Shown here: one piece after another, positions 21,554 to 35,840 of the stretch | Layout: each line of letters begins with the position of its first letter | Numbering within the stretch: the stretch's first letter is position 1 | The notes under the pieces: model-generated | What the model saw: the letters and a program-made list of their open reading frames with translations, nothing else | Told to the model about the DNA's origin: nothing | Databases searched by the model: none | Made by a program: the position numbers and the translations under genes | Assembly: GCF_041956535.1 (NCBI RefSeq) | Contig: NW_027192191.1 | Span: forward strand, 879,443 to 943,442 | Length of the DNA: 64,000 bases | From: Calcarisporiella thermophila CBS 279.70 | Lineage: Eukaryota; Fungi; Calcarisporiellomycota | Direction of reading: 5' to 3'

Positions 21554-22609
21554 CTAGTTGGGAGGATGCTGCCCTATGTGATGCTGTCCACCAAAGTAAT
21601 GGATGCCACCTTGGGAGTTAAAATTGCCGGTGTTGACGTATCCGCCATTTGAGGCAGTGATACTGCCATAGTTATTAGAAACCTGAGACACTGTTACTGG
21701 CGGAGGGGCAGGCGCTTGGCTTATCTGCTTTTCGTCGACTTTAAATTCGTCGGCATCTTTAATATATTCGAGAGATTTTTCGGTGTGGCCGCCATTATAA
21801 TAACCGACAGGGAATTTGCTCAAGAAACGATAGTCGAAATAGGGGTGCTGTTTTCTACCCGTTTTCTCCTCTACATATTTCCTACATGCTTCCGCCCAAT
21901 CGTGAATATATACATAGCCTTCCTGGTTTTTCTCCTGGCCCCAACCCGACAATGCCGCAACTAAGCCCATGGTAAATGCGCTATACCGCTTTACGGCCGA
22001 GCCAACCTCCCTTCCGCGATATCCAGTCCAGGAGCGCTCATTTGCTCGCGACGACGACAAAACCGCAATTCCTTCCCCGGAGCCCAGCTTTTTGATTTGT
22101 TCATCGGAGAGAACTGCTTGGCTCAAGCCTAGCGGCTCCTCTTTTTTGCCACCGAGAGCCAGAAGCTCAGGAACAACTCCGCCAGCGAAACAGCAATTCA
22201 GTAGCAATATCCTCTTTCGAGCGGGGATATCGTTGATTCGATAGAAAAGATCGTCTCCGGATATAGCATTCTCTTCCAACTCCTCATCAGCGCGTAAACC
22301 AGCTGGAACAAGATACACATGAGAGTTATCGTGTGTCACACCGTGGCCGGAGAAAAAGAAAAGCACGGTCGATTGTTCATTTGTGCATCTAGACAGTTCC
22401 TTCAATGCGCCAAGTATATTTTTTCGGGTTGCCTTATCTCCCGTGAGTAATTTGACCTGGTTCTCTGGGTACGCGCAGCGCGACTTATTAGTTAGTGTAT
22501 TGTATAGCAATTCCGCGTCGTTAATGGTGCTCTCGTAGCTTTGTTGCACCTTACCGCGTTCGTCGGTGCCGGTGCCAATGAGGAGTGCGTAAGCGTCTTT
22601 AAATTCCAT
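21554..22609 (-). CDS. Caspase-like cysteine peptidase (Peptidase C14, bacterial/orthocaspase type), intronless, with a C-terminal N/G/Q-rich tail
   Basis: AYALLIG beta strand, ATRKNIL, catalytic His in FFFSGHG, catalytic Cys in LLLNCCFAGG, and p10-like SAFTMGLVAAL and KQHP. Single open 351-aa ORF. Confidence 0.88.
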   Translation of the reverse strand: MEFKDAYALLIGTGTDERGKVQQSYESTINDAELLYNTLTNKSRCAYPENQVKLLTGDKATRKNILGALKELSRCTNEQSTVLFFFSGHGVTHDNSHVYLVPAGLRADEELEENAISGDDLFYRINDIPARKRILLLNCCFAGGVVPELLALGGKKEEPLGLSQAVLSDEQIKKLGSGEGIAVLSSSRANERSWTGYRGREVGSAVKRYSAFTMGLVAALSGWGQEKNQEGYVYIHDWAEACRKYVEEKTGRKQHPYFDYRFLSKFPVGYYNGGHTEKSLEYIKDADEFKVDEKQISQAPAPPPVTVSQVSNNYGSITASNGGYVNTGNFNSQGGIHYFGGQHHIGQHPPN

Positions 22610-23252
22610 ACGAAAAGAACAAAATTAGTACTGTACTTGTTCCTTGAAGCAACATATTTAAGGACTGAGGAAGGTTGGGGCTTGGAAAGTTTAACTTTAA
22701 TATCTTGGAGCAAGATGCTGCACTGAGGGTGGATTGAGTGGCTACTTCGCACAATCCAGCCAATCCTTGTTTATAGCCTCCATCAATTAAAATAAGCTGT
22801 TTTCCATGGACCCTCGAATTTTGGGTGGCGACCATCTCAACGCGACAACAATCCTGTATATTTTGTGTGCGTATTAGCATTAAGCGGTTTTGCGTCAATG
22901 GGCATATCAAGCGCTTTTCTGAAAATTCTGCATGAGAATAAATATGGGCCGCCAACCTCCTTTGCTACAGAATATCAGTGTCAGTGAAAAACTTGATCAA
23001 ATTTTCTAATATGAAAAGTTATTCTGAAGCTCTCAAAGTTGTAAAGGATCAGAAGACTTCGATATCTAATATCTATATAATATCTAATATCTAATGACAT
23101 GAACTTATCTGTCTAGTAATCGTCAATATGTATTTCAATATGAGTACTGAGTACAGCAAAAGCCCGTAATTTATCACCTAGCAGAACTATAAGAAAATGA
23201 ATAAGCAGTAAAATAAAAAAAAAAACAGGTAACAGGGGGACATCATCATCAA

Positions 23253-23290
23253 CGACTCTGCCGTATTACGACCGTAATACGGCAGAGTCG
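23253..23290. repeat. Perfect 18-bp inverted repeat (hairpin) with 2-nt spacer, followed by CTAG
   Basis: cgactctgccgtattacg-ac-cgtaatacggcagagtcg, then ctag at 23291-23294. Confidence 0.95.
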
Positions 23291-23763
23291 CTAGAAGTCG
23301 CATTGGTCACGCCACTCGAATAACGGTTAGAAATCTCGGAGACCGCGCAATTGCAGCCAGCGTGCTTGCCAATAAAGGTGCTCCACGATAGCATGGTGCT
23401 GTGACCAAAACGGGTTTCCATTTCTTAGCCGTACAAAGAAAGATGATGGATGTGCGTCAAGCCAGCACTTGCGATCATGAAGGATAACCGTGGTGTGGCA
23501 CTTTCATGGTAGTTGGTCTTTTAAAATGATACGCCTCCTCTAAGCACTACAGCATTGGCGATGGAGTGATCTCAAAGATGATGCACTTCAACCAAAGGAA
23601 AGACAGTTGCGGCCCGTAGCGGATAACGCTATTCCAAAAACCCAAGGTTATTTGTCCAGCGTGGCGTCCTGCCAAACGATTTGTTGGGGACGCCACTGCG
23701 TCATTAGTTCCGGTGCAACGTCGCCGCTCCTGGCTGCACTCGAGCACGTCCATCCACGTTGTC

Positions 23764-26369
23764 ATGAAGTCCGTAGCCCCACGCATCTCCCCTCAGTCAC
23801 GCTCGTGCGTCGCAGTTCACTCCGGCCGTGCGCCACTCTCGCACCCTGCACACTGTGCATAATCGCCATACACAGTGTGCAAATCGAGCGACCTAACCTG
23901 CCAGCCTGCCTTATCATCTTTCTCCAACTTTGTGCACAGGTTCATGATCGGGGACCTACCGGTCCTCTTCCCTACGACGCCATTTACCCCGAGCAGTACG
24001 CGTACATGTGCGACCTGAAACGCACGCTCGACATCAATGTAAGCCGGAGACCCTTACTTCTTCGCCGGGTTTCGGCAGCCAATTTAGCGTGTTTTCTGTG
24101 CTCACTACCGCGTCGCGTTGTTTCACGTATTGGCGCCTCGCGAACCCCTGCCACCTGCACCCGACTATCCTAACCCGTGCCATGAACTGGAGCGCTCATC
24201 GCGTTGGTATGCCACGCTTGCGCCACATAGGGCCACTGCCTGCTGGAAATGCCCTCGGGAACGGGCAAGACCGTGTCGCTGCTGTCACTCATCATAACCT
24301 ACCAACAGCACTACCCGGAGAAGCGCAAGCTCGTATACTGCTCGCGAACGGTGCCAGAAATTGAAAAGGCGCTTGCCGAGCTGCGCCGGTTGATGGAGTT
24401 CTGCGCCAAGGAACTGGGCTACGTCGAACCCTTCCTTGGTATCAGTCTGACTAGTCGTCGCAACCTGTGCGTGCATCCCAGCATCAGCCTGGAGAAGAAG
24501 GTTAACGTGGTGGATGCGCGCTGCCGCGCCCTGGTAGCGCAGCAAGGCGTCCATGTCGGCCGATCGAGAAAGTCACCTAAGTCCAACTGTGCTTCCTTGC
24601 AGTGCCTGCCTAGAAGGTGTATTCTATATCCATTGCTAATCCGCAAATAACTGCGTTACTTTGCACTGCTCAATGTATCAGCCACTTGAAGCGTCCGAAA
24701 TTCCCAACGTTCTTCCCAATGGCGTTTACACCTTGATGAACTAAAGCAATTGTAATAGTACTGGAATGTGACCTCGGTTTAATTTCGATACTTTCTTAAT
24801 TTTACTGGTTGTTTTCTAAATTCTTAATTAATTGCTATTGTTATTGTATAAAACGAATTTGTAGGAATTTGGAGTTCGAATTAACTTTTTATTTTCTTTA
24901 TTGGATTTTATAATCTTATTTTCTGAACTTACTATTTCTTACCTTGCTATAATAAATATTAAGTTCGATACTTGGTGTTTATTATAGCAATGCGGCAAGG
25001 AAAATAACATCTGCCCGTACTACTTCTCTCGACGATTGGTAGGTATCGCACGTCTTTGCTAGAGCAGAGTCCCGTTTGTGGCTAGATGATCCAGGAAAAC
25101 AAGACTATGTAGGACGTGTGCGCACTGCACCCTGCAAACACTTGCCACGATAATGCGTGCTTCGCTGCTCCTGCGCAATCTCTTGCTCCTCTGCGCCTTC
25201 CCGTACTCACTTTGCTTTTTTATTTTGCCATCGCCGTGGCCAAAACGACAGCTTCCCTTTGCAAACGTCATCCTCTACAGCTACCATTATCTCCTAAAGT
25301 GGCCAACTCAGTCTCCCGAGAGCTGTCCAAGGATTCTATTGTTGTCTTCAATGAAGCTCACAATATTGGTATGCATTCTGCTAAGCATGCGCTTGGTGCC
25401 AGTATCCAGGCTATTTGCTAGGGCTTGGCGCAGTTCTCGAAATTTGCTGATTTTTGCTGTTGCTAAATACTGCTTGCGACAATCCCCATACCTGCACGTG
25501 GTGAAGACAATGTGTGCATCGAATCGCTTAGCATGGATATCGGCCGATATACGCTTGATGCAAGCTCAAGAAGTATTCAGCAGCTGGCGGAGCGAATACA
25601 AGATTCCGTATTTGCAATTGTGTAGCTTTTTTATACCTTTGCTTTTGCCCTTCGCACCTGCCTAGATGACTGCCGTATGCTTATCACGCTGTGTACGAGA
25701 CTGTTTACTACTTCTGCGTCTCCTGATTCCGACGTATGCAGAGTGAAAGAAAAGGGTGCCGAGAAGCTTAAGGACGAGTACCAGCGCTTGGTTGATGGGC
25801 TGCGAGCCGCTGGCCAAGACTGCGATGAAGGCACCTTTTTGGCTAATCCAGGTTGGTTGGCAATAAGTCACTCCGGCTGCTTCATGCTCCTTGTTTGCAC
25901 ATAGGAGACCAAGCGCGACTGCACGGCCGTAGCTTTTTGTAGCAAGAAATGATACACGTGAACCTGTGCTAATTACCGCATGCAATATTGGATGGCTGCC
26001 CCTTCCCATAGTGCTTCCGGATGGTGTCCTTGAAGAGGCCTTCCCTGGCAACATTCGGCGAGCAGAGCATTTTGTAGCGTTTTTGCAACGATTAGTAGAG
26101 TATTTGAAGGTACGGCAACCTCTCACAACGCCAGTCCGGCCTAAAGTTTGGGCCAGTTGTACGACTGGCCGCTCGTATGTTTGTTAGAAATAGCATTCCA
26201 TTATACCAACTTCCACTGATGCTCTAGAACCTTGGCAATGCACGATGCTCCTTGTTGCGCTACATTACATCCAGACTCGATTGCGGGTACTCAACGTCGT
26301 AGCCGAAACGCCGGCATCATTTCTGCAAAATGTCAAAGATGTCACATACATTGACCGCAAACCGCTGCG
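23764..26369 (+). pseudogene. RAD3: RAD3/XPD (ERCC2) helicase pseudogene, N-terminal half only
   Basis: Spliced reading MK|FMIGDLPVLFPYDAIYPEQYAYMCDLKRTLD, GHCLLEMPSGTGKT (Walker A), [42 protein letters not shown], ending at IDRKPLR. Frameshifts near 23970 and 24733, an element inserted in an exon at 24751, and no downstream exons seen. Confidence 0.9.
24751..24986 (+). mobile_element. 236-bp solo-LTR-like element, copy 1, with 5-bp TSD GCAAT
   Basis: Ends TGTAATA...TATTATA, flanked by gcaat at 24746-50 and 24987-91. Removing it restores XPD DELKQCGKENNICPYYFSRR. Contains AATAAA. Confidence 0.88.
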
Positions 26370-27205
26370 GTAAGTTTTGCGCTATTATTATCATCCTGGC
26401 TAGAGTGCATCGGAGGAGTATCGCCGTACCTGGTAATTTAGCAAGCCAGTTATGGTAAGCGTGCTAGATGCGCGCAACTCTTCTAATACTCTCATACCTG
26501 CCGCCTGTAAGTAACTATCCGAGATTCTCGTGGCATGAACCCACCTTTTAAAGGCATGAGAGAAACGTGGTACTAGAGATGAATTCGAAAAAGCCATCAT
26601 ACTTTTCAAGTGGATGCACGCAGAATGAGGATGCTGTAAGCCGATCTGAATCGCGCGAAAGTAGTCATGTAATAGGGAATCCCCAGATTCTTTGAAAAGC
26701 GGTGACGGCCAATGTCACCCCGACTGAGAACTGTTTTCAGCACTGTTATGGCTTGAAAGCTGCCTAAGAAAGAGACGAGCCTAAAAGACGATACCCATAG
26801 CGAGCTATCAGTCATTTTGCTACATAAGGCACCACCTCAAAGACCCCTATTTGTAAAGGAAGGCAGAACCAAGAACAAATGGACTTAATTTCGCATTATG
26901 AAACGGAATAGGGAGTCACTCAATAGAAAGAAATATAAGGACGCGATTTGGGAAGAAATCGACCTTTGGTACGTTTATGTGAGACGTAGCGCCCGCTCGC
27001 CCATCGTCTACCAACGACCGTGTGGACAAAAACCTCCGGCTACAGTCGGAATTCTGGATCCCCCAAAGCAAAAGGAAGCGCTCAACGTGGGGTCGAACCT
27101 TGAGATTAAGAGTCTCACGATCTATCGATTGAGCTAGTCGGGCTTTGCATTGTGTCGTGGCTCTCGTTAATGAATAACGACCCACTCTGTAACAGTTCTG
27201 CAGAC

Positions 27206-27526
27206 TGTTAATGATTCGGATCCTTAATTAATAATGAATCCAATTCAAGAGAATGAATAATGAATTCAAGAGAACGGATTATTACTAACTAAACAATAAC
27301 ACTATAGCAATTATCTTATATCCTCACCTTAATTAATAATGAAAACATATCGAGTATTAAATAAAGATGAATCTCTGGGAAAAAACCTTAAAAAACTCGT
27401 TTTCATGAGCATGTGATCAGTACGTAATAAAAGGAAAGCGGTATTAATTGTAAAAGGAGATAGAGGCTTGGTCGTGCTACACACTCGGCTAGCGAGGAAA
27501 ATAAGTTAACAAGTGCTTCCTTTACA
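27206..27526. mobile_element. Candidate 321-bp solo LTR (TG...CA) with 4-bp TSD AGAC
   Basis: agac|TGTTAA...TTTACA|agac; AT-rich interior with internal repeats (ccttaattaataatgaa x2, aattcaagagaa x2) and AATAAA. Confidence 0.55.
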
Positions 27527-28100
27527 AGACTAGTCAAATGACAGCCTTTAGATAGCCTTTAAATACTGTGACCCACATCGAAAATAGACCAGGGCTAAAC
27601 AACCAGCTAACAAATATAAAAGGAAATAACACATAAAATATACTAAATCGGTTGTGACCATCCATATCAAACTAAAGAAGTACAAAAGTGGTTTAGGCAT
27701 ATGAAACAATACCAAAATAGGTATACACATAAAGTGGCATATTTAGGGTTAGGTTGCATCGAATCATAAAAGGTTGAGCTGTTAGTTCAGTTTTGGTCTA
27801 GTTTCCTGGGCCAAGCTCTGTCTGTGTAGGTAATTACATCGCTGCCACAGCCGAGTCCGGCGTCGAGCCCAGGATGATGCTGGCCTGCACAACGCGTGAA
27901 CCCGTTTCTACTCCACCCACGACAAGCTGGAAACGGGTAACTGGTTACCGAGGAGTGCCCACTACAGTATGGACAATGGCTCTCCTATATTTGCTACAAC
28001 CAATGCAAGGAAAAATAATAAGCAAAATGAACAAAATATGCAGTAGTGGCAGTAGTAGTAATAGGAAGAAAAAGTAATAGTGGCAGGGAAGGAAGCCGCC

Positions 28101-28336
28101 TATAATAAACACCAAGTATCGAACTTAATATTTATTATAGCAAGGTAAGAAATAGTAAGTTCAGAAAATAAGATTATAAAATCCAATAAAGAAAATAAAA
28201 AGTTAATTCGAACTCCAAATTCCTACAAATTCGTTTTATACAATAACAATAGCAATTAATTAAGAATTTAGAAAACAACCAGTAAAATTAAGAAAGTATC
28301 GAAATTAAACCGAGGTCACATTCCAGTACTATTACA
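28101..28336 (-). mobile_element. 236-bp solo-LTR-like element, copy 2 (inverted), with 5-bp TSD CCGCC
   Basis: Exact reverse complement of 24751-24986 by manual comparison; flanked by ccgcc at 28096-100 and 28337-41. Confidence 0.88.
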
Positions 28337-28371
28337 CCGCCAAATCCAGGCGAGTGGCACCAAGAAAAAGA

Positions 28372-30021
28372 TCAGGACCGGATGATGTCAAATGGCGACT
28401 TTTTGCGGCAGGTTAGGTAGCCGTCGACCTTTTCGCATTTGAGGCTGCTGCCACAGTCGCTGTCCTTGGAGCAAATGCAAAAGGCGGTGATGGCACAGTG
28501 CTTAATGCCGGGTGATGGCGTGAGCTGGCTGGAGATTCCCTTAAGGCGACGAGCGAACCGGTTCTCGAAGGTACCGCGCGGGTCGAAGCGAGCCATGGCC
28601 TTGAGGAAATTCTTGCGGCCGGGCAAGCGGTCGTCGGTGAGGAATGCAGGCGTAAACCACACTGCACTGTTCTTGCCCCAGTGGGCGCGGGCTTGGTACT
28701 TATCGTACAGCATCTGCTGGATGGCGAGATAGACGCCGACGCTCATCTGAGGGTCTCTCCCATAATTCTCACGCCAAAACGAGGCAATCTGGAGGTGAAC
28801 CGACTCGCGGTCATGCGGCGCACTAAGGAACGACGAGGTGGCCGGCGAGAAGCGAAGCCAGAGACCAAAAGCGGGAAAGGCAGCGTATTCCTGCCTGAGG
28901 ATGGACTTAATGTCATCCACAGCGGCACTTAGACTTGATGCCGATATTGCCTGTTCGACGTCGAAAGGGACGCCCAATTGCGGAGAGGACCAGCCACACA
29001 TGCCTTCCTTGCACGCGTTGGTCATCATGCGATGACTAAAACCCGTCGAAGGGCTATGGTGGAACAAGTTGAGGTCATCGGAGAAGAAAGGCTGCCTGCC
29101 AGGAACCGTTTTGAACAGTGTAAGCTTGGTAAACTGTTCTAAGGCGGTAAGAGCGAGCTTGTTCTTCGTTGCTTGAATTAACTCCACTCCCATCCCGCCC
29201 GCTACGCGCACGGGCGGGGGCAACTCGGGCAAGAAGTTGGTGTGGTCGTTGCCCCTAGCCTCCACGCCCTTACGTTCGCCGCGCACTACGACGACGTCTT
29301 TGGACGACGGGTACCAGAACATCTCAAAGAACTCGTAGCGTTTGGCTTCGGCGTACGCCCTCCCGTCCGTCAGGATGGTATCGGGTTCGAGAGTCGTGGT
29401 GACCCTGAGCTTGAACGACGGAGTCACCTTGAAAGTGATGTCGGTCAAGATCCCCAGCAGCCCTAGGTTGCACCGAATTGCATCAAAGTCCGGATCGGCG
29501 TCGGTCACCTTGAGGATGTCGCCGTTGCCATCGACCAGCGTGACGGCCACGGCATAGTCGGACGGCATGGACGAGTGGACGAGCGACGAGCCGTGCGAAC
29601 CCGTACCCAGCAACCCACCCATGCTGACGTTGCCCAAGACGGGAAAGTGGTTGAGGGTGACGCCCTCAGCATGTAGCTTCTCCAGCGCGTCGACCAACTG
29701 CTCACCGGCGACGATGGTCGCCGTCATTTTGTCGGCGGACACCGTGACGCCCTTGAGGCCTTTCACGTCGATTGGAATGCCATCGGTGCAGATCACGTCG
29801 GTTATCGAGTGTTGGTTTGCAATGGCCTTGACCGTAAGATTCTTGCCAATGGCCTCGCGCACGATGTCCTGCACCTCGTCGGTCGAGGTAGGACGGCGGA
29901 TCTGGTGCTGCGTAGTGCAGACCATAGTGCCTTGGTAAGATTTGTAGGTGGTACCGGCCACCACTACCGCTAGTAAATGCAAGAGAATAAGGCGGTTGAA
30001 AAGCATGGCGGAGGGAAGCAT
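28372..30021 (-). CDS. Secreted FAD-linked aldonolactone oxidase (L-gulonolactone oxidase / ALO family, plant GulLO-like), intronless
   Basis: Signal peptide MLFNRLILLHLLAVVVAG, FAD_binding_4 motifs (QHS, GGLLGTGSHGSS, LGLLGI), C-terminal HWGKN and a Cys-rich CAITAFCICSKDSDC tail. Start ATG at 30021 or 30006. Confidence 0.85.
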   Translation of the reverse strand: MLPSAMLFNRLILLHLLAVVVAGTTYKSYQGTMVCTTQHQIRRPTSTDEVQDIVREAIGKNLTVKAIANQHSITDVICTDGIPIDVKGLKGVTVSADKMTATIVAGEQLVDALEKLHAEGVTLNHFPVLGNVSMGGLLGTGSHGSSLVHSSMPSDYAVAVTLVDGNGDILKVTDADPDFDAIRCNLGLLGILTDITFKVTPSFKLRVTTTLEPDTILTDGRAYAEAKRYEFFEMFWYPSSKDVVVVRGERKGVEARGNDHTNFLPELPPPVRVAGGMGVELIQATKNKLALTALEQFTKLTLFKTVPGRQPFFSDDLNLFHHSPSTGFSHRMMTNACKEGMCGWSSPQLGVPFDVEQAISASSLSAAVDDIKSILRQEYAAFPAFGLWLRFSPATSSFLSAPHDRESVHLQIASFWRENYGRDPQMSVGVYLAIQQMLYDKYQARAHWGKNSAVWFTPAFLTDDRLPGRKNFLKAMARFDPRGTFENRFARRLKGISSQLTPSPGIKHCAITAFCICSKDSDCGSSLKCEKVDGYLTCRKKSPFDIIRS

Positions 30022-30389
30022 GTCACGTTTGACCGAGAGAAGAGGAGGCGTGACGGAGAAAAGCGAGAAGATATAGACAGTTCGGTTAGGAGAGCAGCAT
30101 CTGTCAGAACCGTAAAAGTAAAACAACCCATTGGTGATACTGAAAGTGACGGCGAAATCGCCGTTGGACGGGTGTCTAGGTGTCAAAATAATAGCCGATC
30201 ATGTTTCTATTAGCACTGGTGGGTCTCAAGTTCAGCAAAGCGACATGGGATTCACATTTGAATGAAAGCTCCGGCGCCATCCAAGTGCGAACATGGTAGG
30301 CGGTCGAACTCGAGTTTCGCCATTGGTGGTCTCCACCAGTGTGCACGTAGAATCTACCTCGGATTAATATCGCAAGATTGGTCTCGAAA

Positions 30390-31520
30390 CGCGAATCGGA
30401 AACCATATAGGTCCGCCGAGACGAAGTCGGTGGAGCTATCCTTCAAAGACGGAGTAGATATTGCAGAAATCCTTTAGAAAGGATTCTTTGTTGACGAGAG
30501 GCGTGTCCCAGCCACAAAAGTCTATAGCCATAAAAAAATAATCGTTCGAATCAACGCACAAGGCCTTCCAATCCAAAAGGAGGAGGATTTTGCAGACAAG
30601 ATCGAATAAAGCTTCAAGATTTTCGGAAAGATATTTGACATCAGATTCGACGGAATCACCTACAAAGAGAGGAGATTCATAACAGATAGAGCAGCTGTAT
30701 ACCTCGACATAACGGAGAACCCAGAAACCATGGAATATATGCCCAGACAAATCTAAATCGATGATGCTCAAGTAATTCTCGATTGGCGAGGGGCCCCCAT
30801 TTTCTGCAGATACTGCAGGAAAGAAGGACACAGAGTGCAAGTATGCCCCTACAGTAACAGACAAGAAAGAATTCCGGAACAGCAAGGAAAATCAACCAAC
30901 CAAGGACCTACGCCAAAAAACCCGCCAACTCAGCGACAAGAAAGCATCGACACGAACACAACCTCGGACTCCGATGGCTTCGAGGTAGTGAGATCCAGGA
31001 AGAAAAGAGGATAAAAGAGAACGGCCACAACCCCTGAACCAGACAGAAGAATCCGTCCTCTAAGGACACCAAATACCCTTAGATCAACTTCAATCGAACC
31101 AACGCAACCAACCGAACAGACTCATTCGGACACCCAGGAAAATCACCAAAATTGTCGAGGAAGAATTCAAGAAGCGCATATCTAATAAAACGATAAAGAG
31201 AATACTCAAGAAGCTCAATGTAAAGCCACTGTCAAATCGTGAGAAATCATAACAGCTATCACGATAGTTCTTGATATACATAATATATCAAGAGCCTCTC
31301 GGGTAGACTCTTTATATTATTGGACTAATGACAGTCTGAATGTGCATTGTCGGCTGAAGCTGCAGAGCCCTCGAAGATCCCAGAGGTTGGTTGAGCACTT
31401 GTGCCCAGCTGAGGTCTCATTAGTGAAGTGAATCTCACGCTTATTCCATAAAACTCCCTATCTGGCGAAGCCACGGCTTCAGTGAAGCGATATTAGTTTG
31501 GATATACAAACATCTTTGTA
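30390..31520 (+). mobile_element. Degenerate non-LTR retrotransposon (L1/Tx1-like) remnant: ORF1 with zinc knuckle plus a structured 3' region
   Basis: Plus-frame translation ...VRINAQGLP...LDWRGAPIFCRYCRKEGHRVQVC (CX2CX4HX4C at 30805-30846) with in-frame stops. A-rich sense strand; boundaries approximate. Confidence 0.7.
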
Positions 31521-31938
31521 AGGAGTTAACAGTTCACCTAGTAAATACTCTTTGATAATCACTTTGTAATAGCTCAAAGCTCTGGTAACTGCGATCATTT
31601 TCTTTATAGACGACTGCCAAATATTAGTGATTTAATATTTCATTTAAGTGCCTATACGTCATTCTTCAAAGCAATAATTATTGCAAGCAAATGTTAAAAA
31701 AACTTTTACCTTAACCGGCAAATATAACAGTGCTGATGTGTATAAAATTCCACGAAATATTGAATATTATTTGCCAAGCCTTGTGGAAACCCAACTTTGG
31801 TAATACTTCTTTTCTTCTCATGCTTCAAATCCTTCGAGTATATAAAGTAGTAAATAATCCATTAAAAATTAGTAGAATTCTGGTCCCAATTCTCGCAATC
31901 ATCTATTTCTCATAGTACTTCGAGAGTTCCTCTGATAA

Positions 31939-34900
31939 ATGGCATCACTCTCTTCAAAAGGTCAGGAAATACCAAGCGGGGACATGAACTTCAAATCGAG
32001 TGTTAGGATGCCTGAGTTCACTGGTATAGTTGACATACACAACTACTCTTTACTTCTTTCAACTTTAAAATTTCTAAACTTATAGCATCCAATCTCATTG
32101 GTGATAATTTGAAAAAATATGTCCCTAATCGCTATTACAATGAGCATTTCTTTGGTGTACCAAAAGTGAATGGAGCTTTCATTGACCGCCCAAGTATCTG
32201 GAATAAAATGACAAACACTCCAGCTAAAGAAACCAGCTCCGTAAAGAGAGTGATTTTAGCGCTAAATGGGCGTGGTGGTGCAGGCAAAACTCAACTTATG
32301 CTTCGATACTGCTACTATCATCGTGATCAATATGACTTCATATTCTGGCTTAGAGCCGACAACTGGATGCTGACAGCAAATTCAATTCGGAGTTTAGCTA
32401 TCAACCTCGGTTTTGATGAGAGGGCTTTTGAGGAAGAATATGCGGATGAAAAGATGATCAAATGGGTTCGTGGCTGGCTTGAGAGAACACCGAGATGGCT
32501 ACTACTCCTTGATAATGCTGATAGCCAGGTACTTGGAAGACTTCCAGACGTTCTACCGCGTCAGGGAGGGACTATTATTTTGTCTACACGTGAGACGGTT
32601 TCAATGGAAGAGGCTGTAGTGATTCACGTCGATAAAATGGAAGAAGAAGAAGCACTCTCACTCCTCCACCAGGGTTCTACAATGGAGTCTATCAACGTAG
32701 AAACTACAAAATTTCATATAGCTAAAGAGCTCGTCGCAGAACTCGAGTATATGCCACTCGCAATTGAGCTCGCACGGGCGTTTATTAAAAACACAAGTCA
32801 GCACTTCCAAGAATACCTAGCACTTTTCAAGAGGTGTCGAGATAGAATGTTTCCAACCATCCACCAAGACTCCCCTGATCCGCATGACCGAAACATAGCA
32901 ACTATTTGTAATATTTTATTCGAGCACTTGCGAAGAGTAGATCCTATCGCAATGAATATTCTCGAAATATGTGCTTTCCTACAACCCAATAACATTCCCG
33001 TGCAATTTTTTGGACGACAATTTTCTAGACTCAAGTTGGATTCTACCCTCCTCGCTTCTTTTAAGAGAGGTTTGAACGTCGATTTTCCTTGTACTGTTAG
33101 CACCTCCTTAGATACAATCAGCACATTTTCATTGGCTAGTTTCGATAATAATGATAAGAGGTGCAAAGCAACTGTATTTACCATACATCCTCTGGTTCAA
33201 AAAACAATATACGAGGATATGAGCGAGGAAAGAAGAATGCATTTGGTTCTTAATCTCGCCGATGCTCTCGACATTGAAACTGAGTTTAACTGCGTATACA
33301 ATCCACATTCACGAGAAATTATGGACGTCTATGCACAGCATATTCTTCATTTTGCTTCAGTGTTCAATAATTCCTACCAAAATGAACCCGTGTCTGAGAG
33401 ATTCTGTAGTCTATTAAACCGAACGATTTATTTTCTATTGCATTCCGGTTTTCTTGTTGGCTTGGAGCGATTGTCAGAGTTTTCAGTCTTGGCTTCACAG
33501 TCAATATACGAAAGTGAGCACACGGAAATAGCGACCTCATTGAATAATCTTGCTACGCTCTTTCGTTATCAGAGTGATTATGCCAGGGCCGAGCAGCTTT
33601 ATGAAAAAGCATTGGCTATTCGAGAGAATATATTGGGACTAGAGCACTCGAAATCAGCAACCTCTTTAAACAACCTAGCCTGTCTTTATCATTACCAATT
33701 TGACTTCGATAGAGCTCTGCTATTGTTTCAAAGAGCTTTGACTATCTACGAGAGATCACTAGGATACGAACATCCATTTACAATAACCATACTGAACAAT
33801 CTCGCCGAATGCCACAACGACCAAGGAAACTACGATAGAGCGGAGCCATTGTACCAAAAGTTACTGGCCATTGACGAAAAGCTGTCGGGATCGGAACACT
33901 TGGCCACTGCTGTATCTCTGAGTAATTTGGCTGACATATACCAGAGCCAGTATAAATGCTCGAGTGCTGAGCCGCTTTACACTAAAGCTCTGAGTATTAA
34001 AGAGAAATTGCTAGGACGTGATCATCTCAATGTGATTGACTCTCTGAACGATCTCTCTTCACTCTACCATGTCCAAGGAAATTTTAACAAAGCCTCGAGT
34101 ATATCCACTCAGAGCCTTAGGATTTCGAGCAATCTATCAGATATTGAGAACACATGTATGGATTTTCTCTACACTTTATATGAACAGGCTGGGTTCTATC
34201 ATGATTTGAAGGAGTACAACAAAAACGAGCACATTTATCAGCGTTCACTTGCAACTGAAGAGATTGTATTGGAATTTGAGCATCCACTCCCCACAAAATC
34301 CTTAAAACACCTTGCCCATCTATTCTATCAGGCGAGAAATATGGACGATAAAGCCGAACCGATATATATGAGGGTTTTGGAAGCCCAAGAAAAGATTTTA
34401 GGGACAGAGCATCCATACGTAGCAATATCACTTGACAGTCTGGCGGAGTTCCATCGATATAAGGAGAACTACGATAAAGCAGAACCTTTTTACGAGCGAG
34501 CACTGGAAATTCGCGAAAAGGCGTGGGGCTCTGATCACATATTCTTAGCAAATTCCCTTGACAATCTTGCCTGGGTTTGTCTTGGACAAGATAATAATAG
34601 CAAGGCCGATCCACTTTATCAGCGAGCACTAGAAATTATTGATAGAAACTTTGGACCTGAACACCCTGACACGATAAGATATCTAGAAGATATGATCACG
34701 TGTTATTTATCCTATGGCAAAAGGGAGCAGGCCGAATTATTGCATTGTCGTCTACTTTCGACCCAAGAGAAGCAATTGGAATCCAGTTGTCCAAATGAAT
34801 TGAATTTTGACATTATATACACAATCCCGGGGACTTTTGAGAGAGCCAAATTACTATATCAGCGACTACTTATTGCGCAAGAAACTCTCTTGGGTTCTGA

Positions 34901-35840
34901 ACACAAAGACGTAGCAAAGCGTGTAGAAGAGCTAGCTTATTACTACAAATACAATAGAAAATACGAGGAATATGAATCACAACTCCAGCGAGCGATGGCA
35001 ATTCGGGAAAAATCGCATGGATTGGTACATCCCGATACAAGGAGATCTCTAGGAATGTTGGTTAGGCACTATTGTGACCAAAGTGATTATGAAAAGGCTG
35101 AATCAATTCTACACAGAGCTTACGGGATTCTGGAAAGTGAATTGGGACCTGATCATCCGGATACGAGAGATATGTTGCAAGATTTTGCTAAACTTTATTA
35201 CAACAAAGGTGACCTCTATAGAGCTGAAATTTTCTACAAACGTATGTTGGAGATTTCCGAGAAAGAGTTTGGGCACGATCATCCAGATAACGTGGATTAT
35301 ATCAACAAACTTGCCAGTTTCTATTGCGACAAAAAAGATTACGGTAATGCGGAACTACTCTACCAACGCTCTTTAGATATCAACGCGAAAACACTTGGTC
35401 CAGATCCGGAAACAGTAGTTTCTATGAATCGGCTGGCAGAATTTTACCTCGAACAGAAAGAGCTTGAAAAATCGGAAACGCACTATAAGAACTCCTTGGA
35501 GATCACTGCAATAATCGAAGGACCAGATACTTTATATTCAGCGAGAATCCAACTGAAGCTTGCCTCGATATATCGTCAATGGGGTCAGTATGAGAAAGCC
35601 GCGTCACTCTATCAACAATCGCTGTCCGTCTTCGAACATATATTTGGATCGAATGATGAGGATACAATAACCATTTTATGTGACCTGGGAACACTATATC
35701 AGAAATGGGGGTACCATACGATGGCCCAGTCATTTTTTAAGCGAGTGTTGGAGTTCCGTGAAAAAACGCTTGGGACCGACCATTCTGACACGAACCATAT
35801 ACGAGCACTTTTAGAAAATATTGAAATACATAATGACTAG
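31939..35840 (+). CDS. Fungal NLR-like STAND protein: NB-ARC + TPR (42-aa kinesin-light-chain-type repeats); exons 31939-32023 and 32086-35840
   Basis: Walker A GRGGAGKTQL, Walker B WLLLLDNAD, IILSTR, YMPLAI and IHPLVQ, followed by many xHPxxAxSLNNLA...Y.RAL repeats. A phase-1 GT-AG intron at 32024-32085 links an upstream ATG exon in frame. Confidence 0.9.

Follow-up and report, generated by a model that had tools for sequence, protein, structure and literature searches.

The caspase gene and the neighbouring receptor gene

A 64,000-nucleotide stretch of the genome of Calcarisporiella thermophila (Mucoromycota), here called the window (G000:C1:879443–943442 of a 28.2-Mb assembly), carries two genes of interest: one encodes a caspase-type protease, the other a NOD-like receptor (NLR). 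The protease ends in a short Gly/Asn-rich motif, and the relation of this motif to the NLRs of the same genome is the subject of this report. An initial annotation of the window had read the two genes as an inflammasome-like module. Both of its gene calls agree with the present analysis, and the features are collected in Table 1.

The caspase reading frame matches Peptidase_C14 (PF00656) with an E value of 4e-16 and 59.8 bits (cut-off 21.4) over residues 7–260, and this is the only Pfam match of the whole protein. Residues His89 and Cys140 are unchanged in all 15 aligned members of the family (alignment A1). By sequence, then, the protein is a member of Peptidase C14 with an intact His/Cys pair, and proteolytic activity is predicted. 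An AlphaFold2 model of the monomer (predicted template modelling score, pTM, 0.74) is confident for residues 1–273 and disordered in a loop at residues 150–165 and in the C-terminal 78 residues. The nearest structures to the modelled core in a Foldseek search were metacaspase 9, MALT1, legumain and Yca1 (probability 1.00), and the core is predicted to adopt the caspase-hemoglobinase fold.

The window caspase is closest to a paralogue on its own contig, at a distance of 136 kb (C1:765222; 45% identity), followed by proteins of Jimgerdemannia and Endogone (37–45%) and then by bacterial caspases, which are its closest non-fungal kin (38% identity for a relative from Blastocatellia, for example). 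A caspase domain followed by an acidic linker and a Gly/Asn-rich end is the layout conserved in Calcarisporiella, Jimgerdemannia, Endogone and bacteria (A1), so that the amyloid-like tail pointed out in the initial annotation is real as a conserved feature. There are three loci of this caspase type in the genome, namely the window gene, the paralogue and a copy on contig C39 that is probably a pseudogene, in addition to two ordinary metacaspase loci. The paralogue lies head-to-head with a 599-amino-acid open frame on the minus strand (L025:6172–7968) that has several hydrophobic stretches and no Pfam match; a homologue of this membrane-type frame was sought in the window and none was found.

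In the Blastocatellia genome (GCA_035249305.1, L003:7296–15156) the caspase gene is preceded by a kinase-ankyrin gene and followed by genes for a 347-amino-acid protein and for a KGGVGR-type ATPase-TIR-WD40 protein, an apparent operon that looks like a conflict system. At this one bacterial locus, comparison of the neighbouring proteins with the caspase tail motif gave no match. Several of the bacterial caspase relatives carry PF19955, which we take to be the effector-associated domain EAD1.

The joined exons of the NLR gene encode 1279 amino acids, the same length and N-terminus as in the public model VTP21DRAFT_386 (P0042), and this agrees with the start codon called earlier at position 31939. 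The protein matches NB-ARC (PF00931; E 1e-10, 41.8 bits, cut-off 23.5) and TPR_12 (E 2e-138, 451 bits, 14 stretches), along with TPR_10 and, weakly, DUF7779. Its sequence places it among the NLRs of the signal transduction ATPases with numerous domains (STAND) class, with an NB-ARC-TPR architecture. Walker A lies at residue 89 of the spliced protein and, because the 89 residues that precede it hold no Pfam domain, the NLR lacks an N-terminal effector domain, as had been noted. A phylogeny of the NB-ARC region places all seven NLRs annotated in Calcarisporiella in a single clade (support 99/98) that excludes relatives from Jimgerdemannia and metagenomes, and the longest terminal branch is that of the window NLR.

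Table 1. Features at the locus and at two related loci. Positions refer to the window unless a contig is named; pLDDT, predicted local distance difference test.
Feature	Position	Strand	Remarks
Caspase gene, intronless	21554–22609	minus	351-amino-acid open reading frame (protein P0001); Pfam Peptidase_C14
Caspase C-terminal Gly/Asn-rich motif, putatively signalling	21581–21697	minus	about residues 305–343; aligns over its full length with NLR N-terminal motifs (alignment A2)
Acidic, Pro-rich linker from caspase domain to tail motif	21698–21790	minus	about residues 274–304; pLDDT <50; variable in A1
XPD/Rad3-type helicase fragment, pseudogene piece	24249–24650	plus	Pfam DEAD_2 1.2e-14 on a 133-amino-acid open reading frame; outside the system
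Inverted repeat, left arm, 237 nt	24751–24987		100% complementary to 28100–28336
Inverted repeat, right arm, 237 nt	28100–28336		100% complementary to 24751–24987
FAD/ALO-type lactone oxidase, intact	28372–30186	minus	604-amino-acid open reading frame; FAD_binding_4 1.4e-20, ALO 2.6e-17; outside the system
NLR exon 1	31939–32023	plus	28 codons and 1 base; degenerate N-terminus without detectable motif; splice site from public model P0042 and GT..AG
NLR intron, 62 nt	32024–32085	plus	GT at 32024, AG at 32084–32085
NLR exon 2	32086–35840	plus	NB-ARC at about 32241–32819, helical region, TPR array at about 33489–35765, stop at 35838–35840
Third bacterial-type caspase copy	G000:C39, about 19.1–20.2 kb (L026:9629–10000 and L032:19–675)		one in-frame TGA; tail partly conserved
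Patatin-like phospholipase, free-standing, multi-exon	G000:C16:694917–696363 (L030:4918–6364)	plus	first exon encodes the motif

A terminal motif common to NLRs, two caspases and a patatin

About 22 NLR loci related to the window NLR are present in the genome, several of them decayed, in some 18 clusters. The 1.5 kb upstream of the NB-ARC exon was taken from 20 of these loci. The NB-ARC exons of the intact copies all stay open for just 20–50 codons upstream of the conserved start region. Roughly 150–250 nt further upstream, 13 copies have a short exon that starts with ATG and encodes a conserved peptide of 30–34 residues, and one pseudogene retains the peptide without the ATG; at least 14 of the approximately 22 loci thus have an N-terminal motif on a small exon of its own. 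Public models of four paralogues (P0044, P0045, P0057 and P0060) splice this mini-exon to the NB-ARC exon, and the motif is therefore the extreme N-terminus of the receptor, beginning at residue 1; the model of the window NLR is spliced in the same way. The public model P0043 (G000:C1:522.7–524.3k) puts NB-ARC together with roughly 600 residues that include a fungal transcription-factor domain (PF04082). Immediately upstream of its NB-ARC exon there is a motif exon with a TGA close by, and the model is probably a gene-model fusion.

The motif starts with Ser-Gln, has a Gly-x-Val/Ile-His-Ala core and a Gly-Gly pair, and finishes with a Gly-Asn pair, then an Asn and a final Gly. Relative to the coding sequence of the window it is rich in Gly (2.5-fold), Asn (2.9-fold) and Val (2.0-fold), as well as in Ile, and poor in Lys (0.27-fold), Pro (0.17-fold), Leu (0.22-fold), Asp and Glu. 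This composition matches the bias of fungal and bacterial amyloid signalling motifs as described in a report on bacterial motifs (bioRxiv 10.1101/2020.01.06.895854).

The tails of the window caspase and of its paralogue are collinear with the NLR motifs over about 30 positions, the Ser-Gln start and the Gly-Asn pair included (A2). A profile built from the 13 NLR exons alone was run against 6642 six-frame pieces from the window and 12 other loci. It matched the N-terminus of a gene on contig C16 (E 3e-7), the tail of the paralogous caspase (8e-5), an NLR relic just upstream of the window (9e-5) and the tail of the window caspase (0.003); the next match was an unassigned piece on C18 (0.014), and no unrelated piece among the 6642 fell below E 0.01. 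When the same NLR-only profile (A3) was run against the entire assembly, there were 18 matches in all: 14 NLR N-termini (E 3e-14 to 7e-7), the C16 gene (1.3e-5), the NLR relic (0.014), the paralogous caspase tail (0.019) and the window caspase tail (0.034). The C16 gene shows Pfam Patatin on three exons in order, has no NB-ARC and carries the motif at its N-terminus; its product is probably a third effector of the network proposed below. In local alignments scored against composition-preserving shuffles, the window caspase tail reaches z values of 4.5–7.1 with five of the NLR exons, while the tail of the paralogue favours a partly different set. The motif is therefore exclusive in this genome to NLRs, two caspases and one patatin, and we are confident that its sharing between receptors and effectors is genuine.

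A resemblance of this kind could arise with no functional link, through low-complexity composition or old exon shuffling, with the caspase and the NLR side by side by coincidence in an accessory region that has few genes. The motif is a short one of biased composition, NLR loci are numerous, the profile E values for the caspase tails are modest and the NLR next to the caspase has no motif, all of which fit such an origin. It is at odds with the shuffle scores, in which composition is kept, and with a collinear alignment that takes in both the Ser-Gln start and the Gly-Asn pair; moreover, the sole matches outside the NLRs in the genome are termini of three enzymes whose classes are known as NLR effectors. 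We regard the absence of a functional link as quite unlikely.

The window NLR itself stands apart from its paralogues. Its exon 1, scored with a motif profile from which it had been left out, gets −1.2 bits, a value reached by 685 of 2000 shuffles; against the caspase tails it reaches a pairwise z of 2.4; and in A2 it has a nine-residue gap and aligns over the second half of the motif only. The mismatch between this N-terminus and the caspase tail, mentioned as a caveat in the initial annotation, is thus upheld. Since the motif is also found in a distant NLR cluster on C2, whose members are 28–30% identical to the window NLR, the most economical explanation is an ancestral motif that the window NLR has lost.

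Linkage of the two genes and the DNA between them

The caspase and NLR genes are oriented divergently and their start codons are separated by 9329 bp, in agreement with the 9.3 kb described before. It had been proposed on this basis that they form a dedicated inflammasome-like pair, once head-to-head and later separated by insertions, in which the NLR directly activates the caspase. Apart from their orientation and proximity, a few observations favour such a pair. An NLR is expected within 10 kb by chance with a probability of 1.3–1.7% per effector locus (18–24 NLR loci in 28 Mb), or 5–7% over four effector loci (the three caspase loci and the patatin), a figure that makes the adjacency suggestive only. 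On the far side of the caspase from the intact NLR, at a distance of about 30 kb, there is a second, motif-bearing NB-ARC relic, which makes the neighbourhood look mildly enriched; NLR loci cluster anyway. The z of 2.4 could be a weak residual likeness between exon 1 and the caspase tails, and some dispersed repeats do occur in the gap. The relic is a decayed NB-ARC fragment with its motif exon on the minus strand (G000:C1:870823–871423; L029:5824–6424), about 8 kb before the start of the window.

Other observations speak against the pair. As the window NLR has no detectable motif, its N-terminus scoring no better than shuffles, it is unlikely to be the dedicated partner of the window caspase. 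The motif-bearing NLRs are on other contigs or far from the caspase, and the sole adjacent NLR is one without the motif. The caspase flanks were covered for about 9–10 kb where the contig allowed: no NLR-like sequence was found within about 10 kb on either side of the paralogous caspase or of the C39 copy, and none by tblastn on three Jimgerdemannia and Endogone (Endogonales) caspase contigs of 11–13 kb (L001, L002 and L035), where the open reading frames near the caspases have no Pfam domain of interest. Linkage of such caspases to NLRs, offered earlier as a check on the pair, therefore recurs at none of the two paralogous and three orthologous loci, and no related genome was found in which the two genes abut. 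At most, their closeness is a weak relic of local clustering. It is very unlikely that the window NLR is the partner of the window caspase. Because the adjacent NLR is the one copy in which no motif is detectable, a search based on linkage, as used for such systems, would miss the one described here.

The intervening DNA bears on the insertion history as well. The gap had been described as largely inserted or mobile, with a palindrome, an XPD pseudogene, solo long terminal repeats (LTRs), a GC-rich oxidase and a remnant of a long interspersed nuclear element (LINE). The XPD fragment (68–80% DNA identity to G000:C17:419.8–420.2k), the oxidase and a 237-nt inverted pair were all recovered; in open reading frames of at least 45 amino acids scanned in the gap, no reverse-transcriptase, LINE or transposase domain was found, and besides the 237-nt pair the gap has no palindrome of 40 nt or more. 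The oxidase reading frame is single copy in the genome and has about 57% GC in a region that otherwise has 40–47%. The inverted pair encloses 3.1 kb and has about five diverged copies (75–91% identity) on C32, C6, C20, C4 and C16; its perfect complementarity suggests a very recent event, or a foldback or terminal-inverted-repeat element, rather than two solo LTRs. A whole-genome search with the gap DNA returned as repeats this pair, a sequence of about 300 nt (27188–27482) and one of about 80 nt (27064–27145). Dispersed repeats thus amount to about 9% of the gap. With the remaining 91% or so single copy and the oxidase gene intact, the gap is not largely mobile, and an intact single-copy gene among few repeats leaves an earlier head-to-head state, split by insertions, without evidence. 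Taken with the missing motif, these results make a dedicated, insertion-split pair highly improbable.

A proposed NLR-to-effector network

The data presented above lead us to lean towards a model in which an NLR-to-effector network spans the genome and the window contains one of its effectors and one degenerate sensor. The network and its polymerising mechanism are modelled on the NWD2/HET-S system of Podospora anserina (PMC4344463), on many-to-few cases in Basidiomycetes (PMC9815663) and on the bacterial amyloid signalling sequence (BASS) systems with a CHAT protease. Ligand-driven oligomerisation of an NLR would gather its N-terminal motifs, which would take on a cross-beta fold and template the same fold in the caspase tail. 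The caspase would then polymerise and become activated by proximity, possibly with cleavage in the disordered 150–165 loop, and the active enzyme would cut targets, leading to cell death or defence. The earlier proposal of an NLR-to-caspase module is partly supported in this form: the motif common to the caspase tail and at least 14 paralogous NLRs argues for a receptor-to-caspase network, and it is the adjacent NLR as partner, and with it the dedicated pair split by insertions, that is not supported.

Several points weigh against this model. With the NLR-only profile the genome-wide E values of the caspase tails are modest (0.02–0.03), the search scores just those candidates that pass a loose first look, and the two tail matches are not independent because the caspases are paralogues. 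A Pfam-A scan of all 16 motif instances (E up to 10) gave no match bar one chance hit at 0.25. The patatin carries its motif N-terminally, whereas effectors usually carry theirs at the C-terminus. The cross-beta fold is deduced from the pattern and position of the motif. Genes for NLR and effector are not adjacent in the manner of NWD2/HET-S; adjacency is typical and not obligatory, because non-adjacent cases have been documented (PMC9815663). A Pfam search of the whole genome for Gasdermin gave no match. In the Endogonales, the Calcarisporiella profile does not match the caspase tails, and one Jimgerdemannia NLR locus (L034) has upstream neither a recognisable motif exon nor a match to Endogonales caspase tails. 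Among 125 retrieved proteins, no NLR N-terminus convincingly matches a profile of the Endogonales tails; the Endogonales NLR models are truncated at the N-terminus, and the public models P0047 and P0050 begin at the P-loop. A complex prediction with three copies of P0044 residues 1–45 and P0001 residues 296–351 gave a score of 0.01, which speaks neither for the model nor against it.

Some of these points would also suit a real functional link of another, non-amyloid kind, in which the motif would serve as a homotypic adaptor, as a peptide that docks onto a common partner, or as a signal for localisation or turnover. Exclusivity to the NLR, caspase and patatin families is as expected for such a link, and an N-terminal motif on the patatin is unusual for an amyloid-controlled effector. 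No motif instance matched the curated prion-forming or amyloid-motif families (HRAM/HET-s, PP and sigma), as far as these are modelled in Pfam. Bacterial caspases couple to STAND and other NTPases through non-amyloid adaptor domains, and the Blastocatellia caspase adjoins its ATPase-TIR-WD40 gene with no motif in common. Conversely, a localisation or degradation signal would not be expected to sit N-terminally in one class of proteins and C-terminally in another. The length of the motif, its terminal position, its Gly/Asn/Val/Ile bias and Lys/Pro/Leu depletion, and its disorder in the monomer fit amyloid signalling motifs as the BASS report portrays them. On balance we consider a non-amyloid link unlikely and retain templated polymerisation as the working model.

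NLR-associated amyloid signalling has been described in Ascomycota, Basidiomycota and filamentous bacteria, and its fungal effectors are pore-formers, lipases and nucleoside phosphorylases. To our knowledge, the caspase-related proteases tied to NLRs in fungi have so far been fused CHAT domains. The system proposed here resembles NWD2/HET-S of P. anserina, which signals through the HRAM amyloid motif (PMC4344463), in that the NLR begins with a short motif where an effector domain would otherwise be, and a separate effector ends in the same motif after a flexible linker, with templating proposed to follow NLR oligomerisation. It differs in most particulars: the effector is a C14 caspase (with the patatin in addition) and not a HeLo pore-former, the motif belongs to a different sequence family with no Pfam match and is present in single copy instead of as two pseudo-repeats, the NLR is of the NB-ARC-TPR and not the NACHT-WD40 type, the phylum is Mucoromycota, and the motif-bearing NLRs are unlinked to the effectors, many NLRs facing few effectors. 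The nearest known layout is that of Agaricomycetes such as Moniliophthora roreri, in which dozens of short NLR N-termini have a motif in common with the C-termini of about two effectors encoded elsewhere (PMC9815663). This many-to-few, non-adjacent arrangement is the one seen here; the Agaricomycete effectors, unlike ours, have pore-forming MLKL/HeLo-like domains. That survey, the main one for fungi, makes no mention of caspases, Peptidase_C14 or Mucoromycota, and a search of the literature for an NLR-caspase motif system of this sort found no description.

The nearest known type of effector is bacterial. In BASS systems a caspase-like CHAT protease has a C-terminal motif in common with an NLR N-terminus (bioRxiv 10.1101/2020.01.06.895854), so that a caspase-fold protease with a C-terminal motif matching an NLR N-terminus is found in both cases. 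The closest non-fungal kin of the Calcarisporiella caspase are likewise bacterial and have similar Gly/Asn-rich tails. The BASS proteases are CHAT proteins (PF12770) encoded in adjacent gene pairs of filamentous bacteria, whereas the present ones are fungal Peptidase_C14 proteins unlinked to the motif-bearing NLRs; also unlike BASS, none of the genes next to the one bacterial relative whose locus was read encodes a matching motif. There are also fungal NLRs that incorporate a CHAT protease and adjoin gasdermin genes, and a review contrasts this fused protease of fungi with the separate caspase of mammals (PMC10197012). The common ground with the present case would be an NLR-type receptor that controls a caspase-related protease in a cell-death pathway; in Calcarisporiella the caspase is a protein of its own, and Pfam showed no gasdermin in the genome.

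In the animal inflammasome and apoptosome, a STAND sensor (an NLR or Apaf-1) uses a polymerising homotypic module to recruit caspase-1 or caspase-9, whose activation is proximity-driven. The parallel lies in the STAND ATPase sensor, the separate caspase and the homotypic module, which is here a proposal. The animal adaptor is a folded death-fold domain (CARD or PYD), in contrast to the 30-residue amyloid-type motif of Calcarisporiella, and because the caspase groups with metacaspases and orthocaspases within the fold, the resemblance does not imply that the pathways share an origin.

Our tentative proposal is therefore that an early-diverging fungus has an inflammasome-like network in which at least 12 NB-ARC-TPR sensors might signal through a so far undescribed prion-like motif to two free-standing caspases and a patatin, which would be the first polymerising adaptor between an NLR and a separate caspase outside animals. 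The network and the caspase may have been jointly inherited from bacteria. If the proposal is true, amyloid signalling would reach a third fungal phylum and gain both a new motif family and a new class of effector, and there would be a simple, testable model for receptor-to-caspase activation by templated polymerisation.

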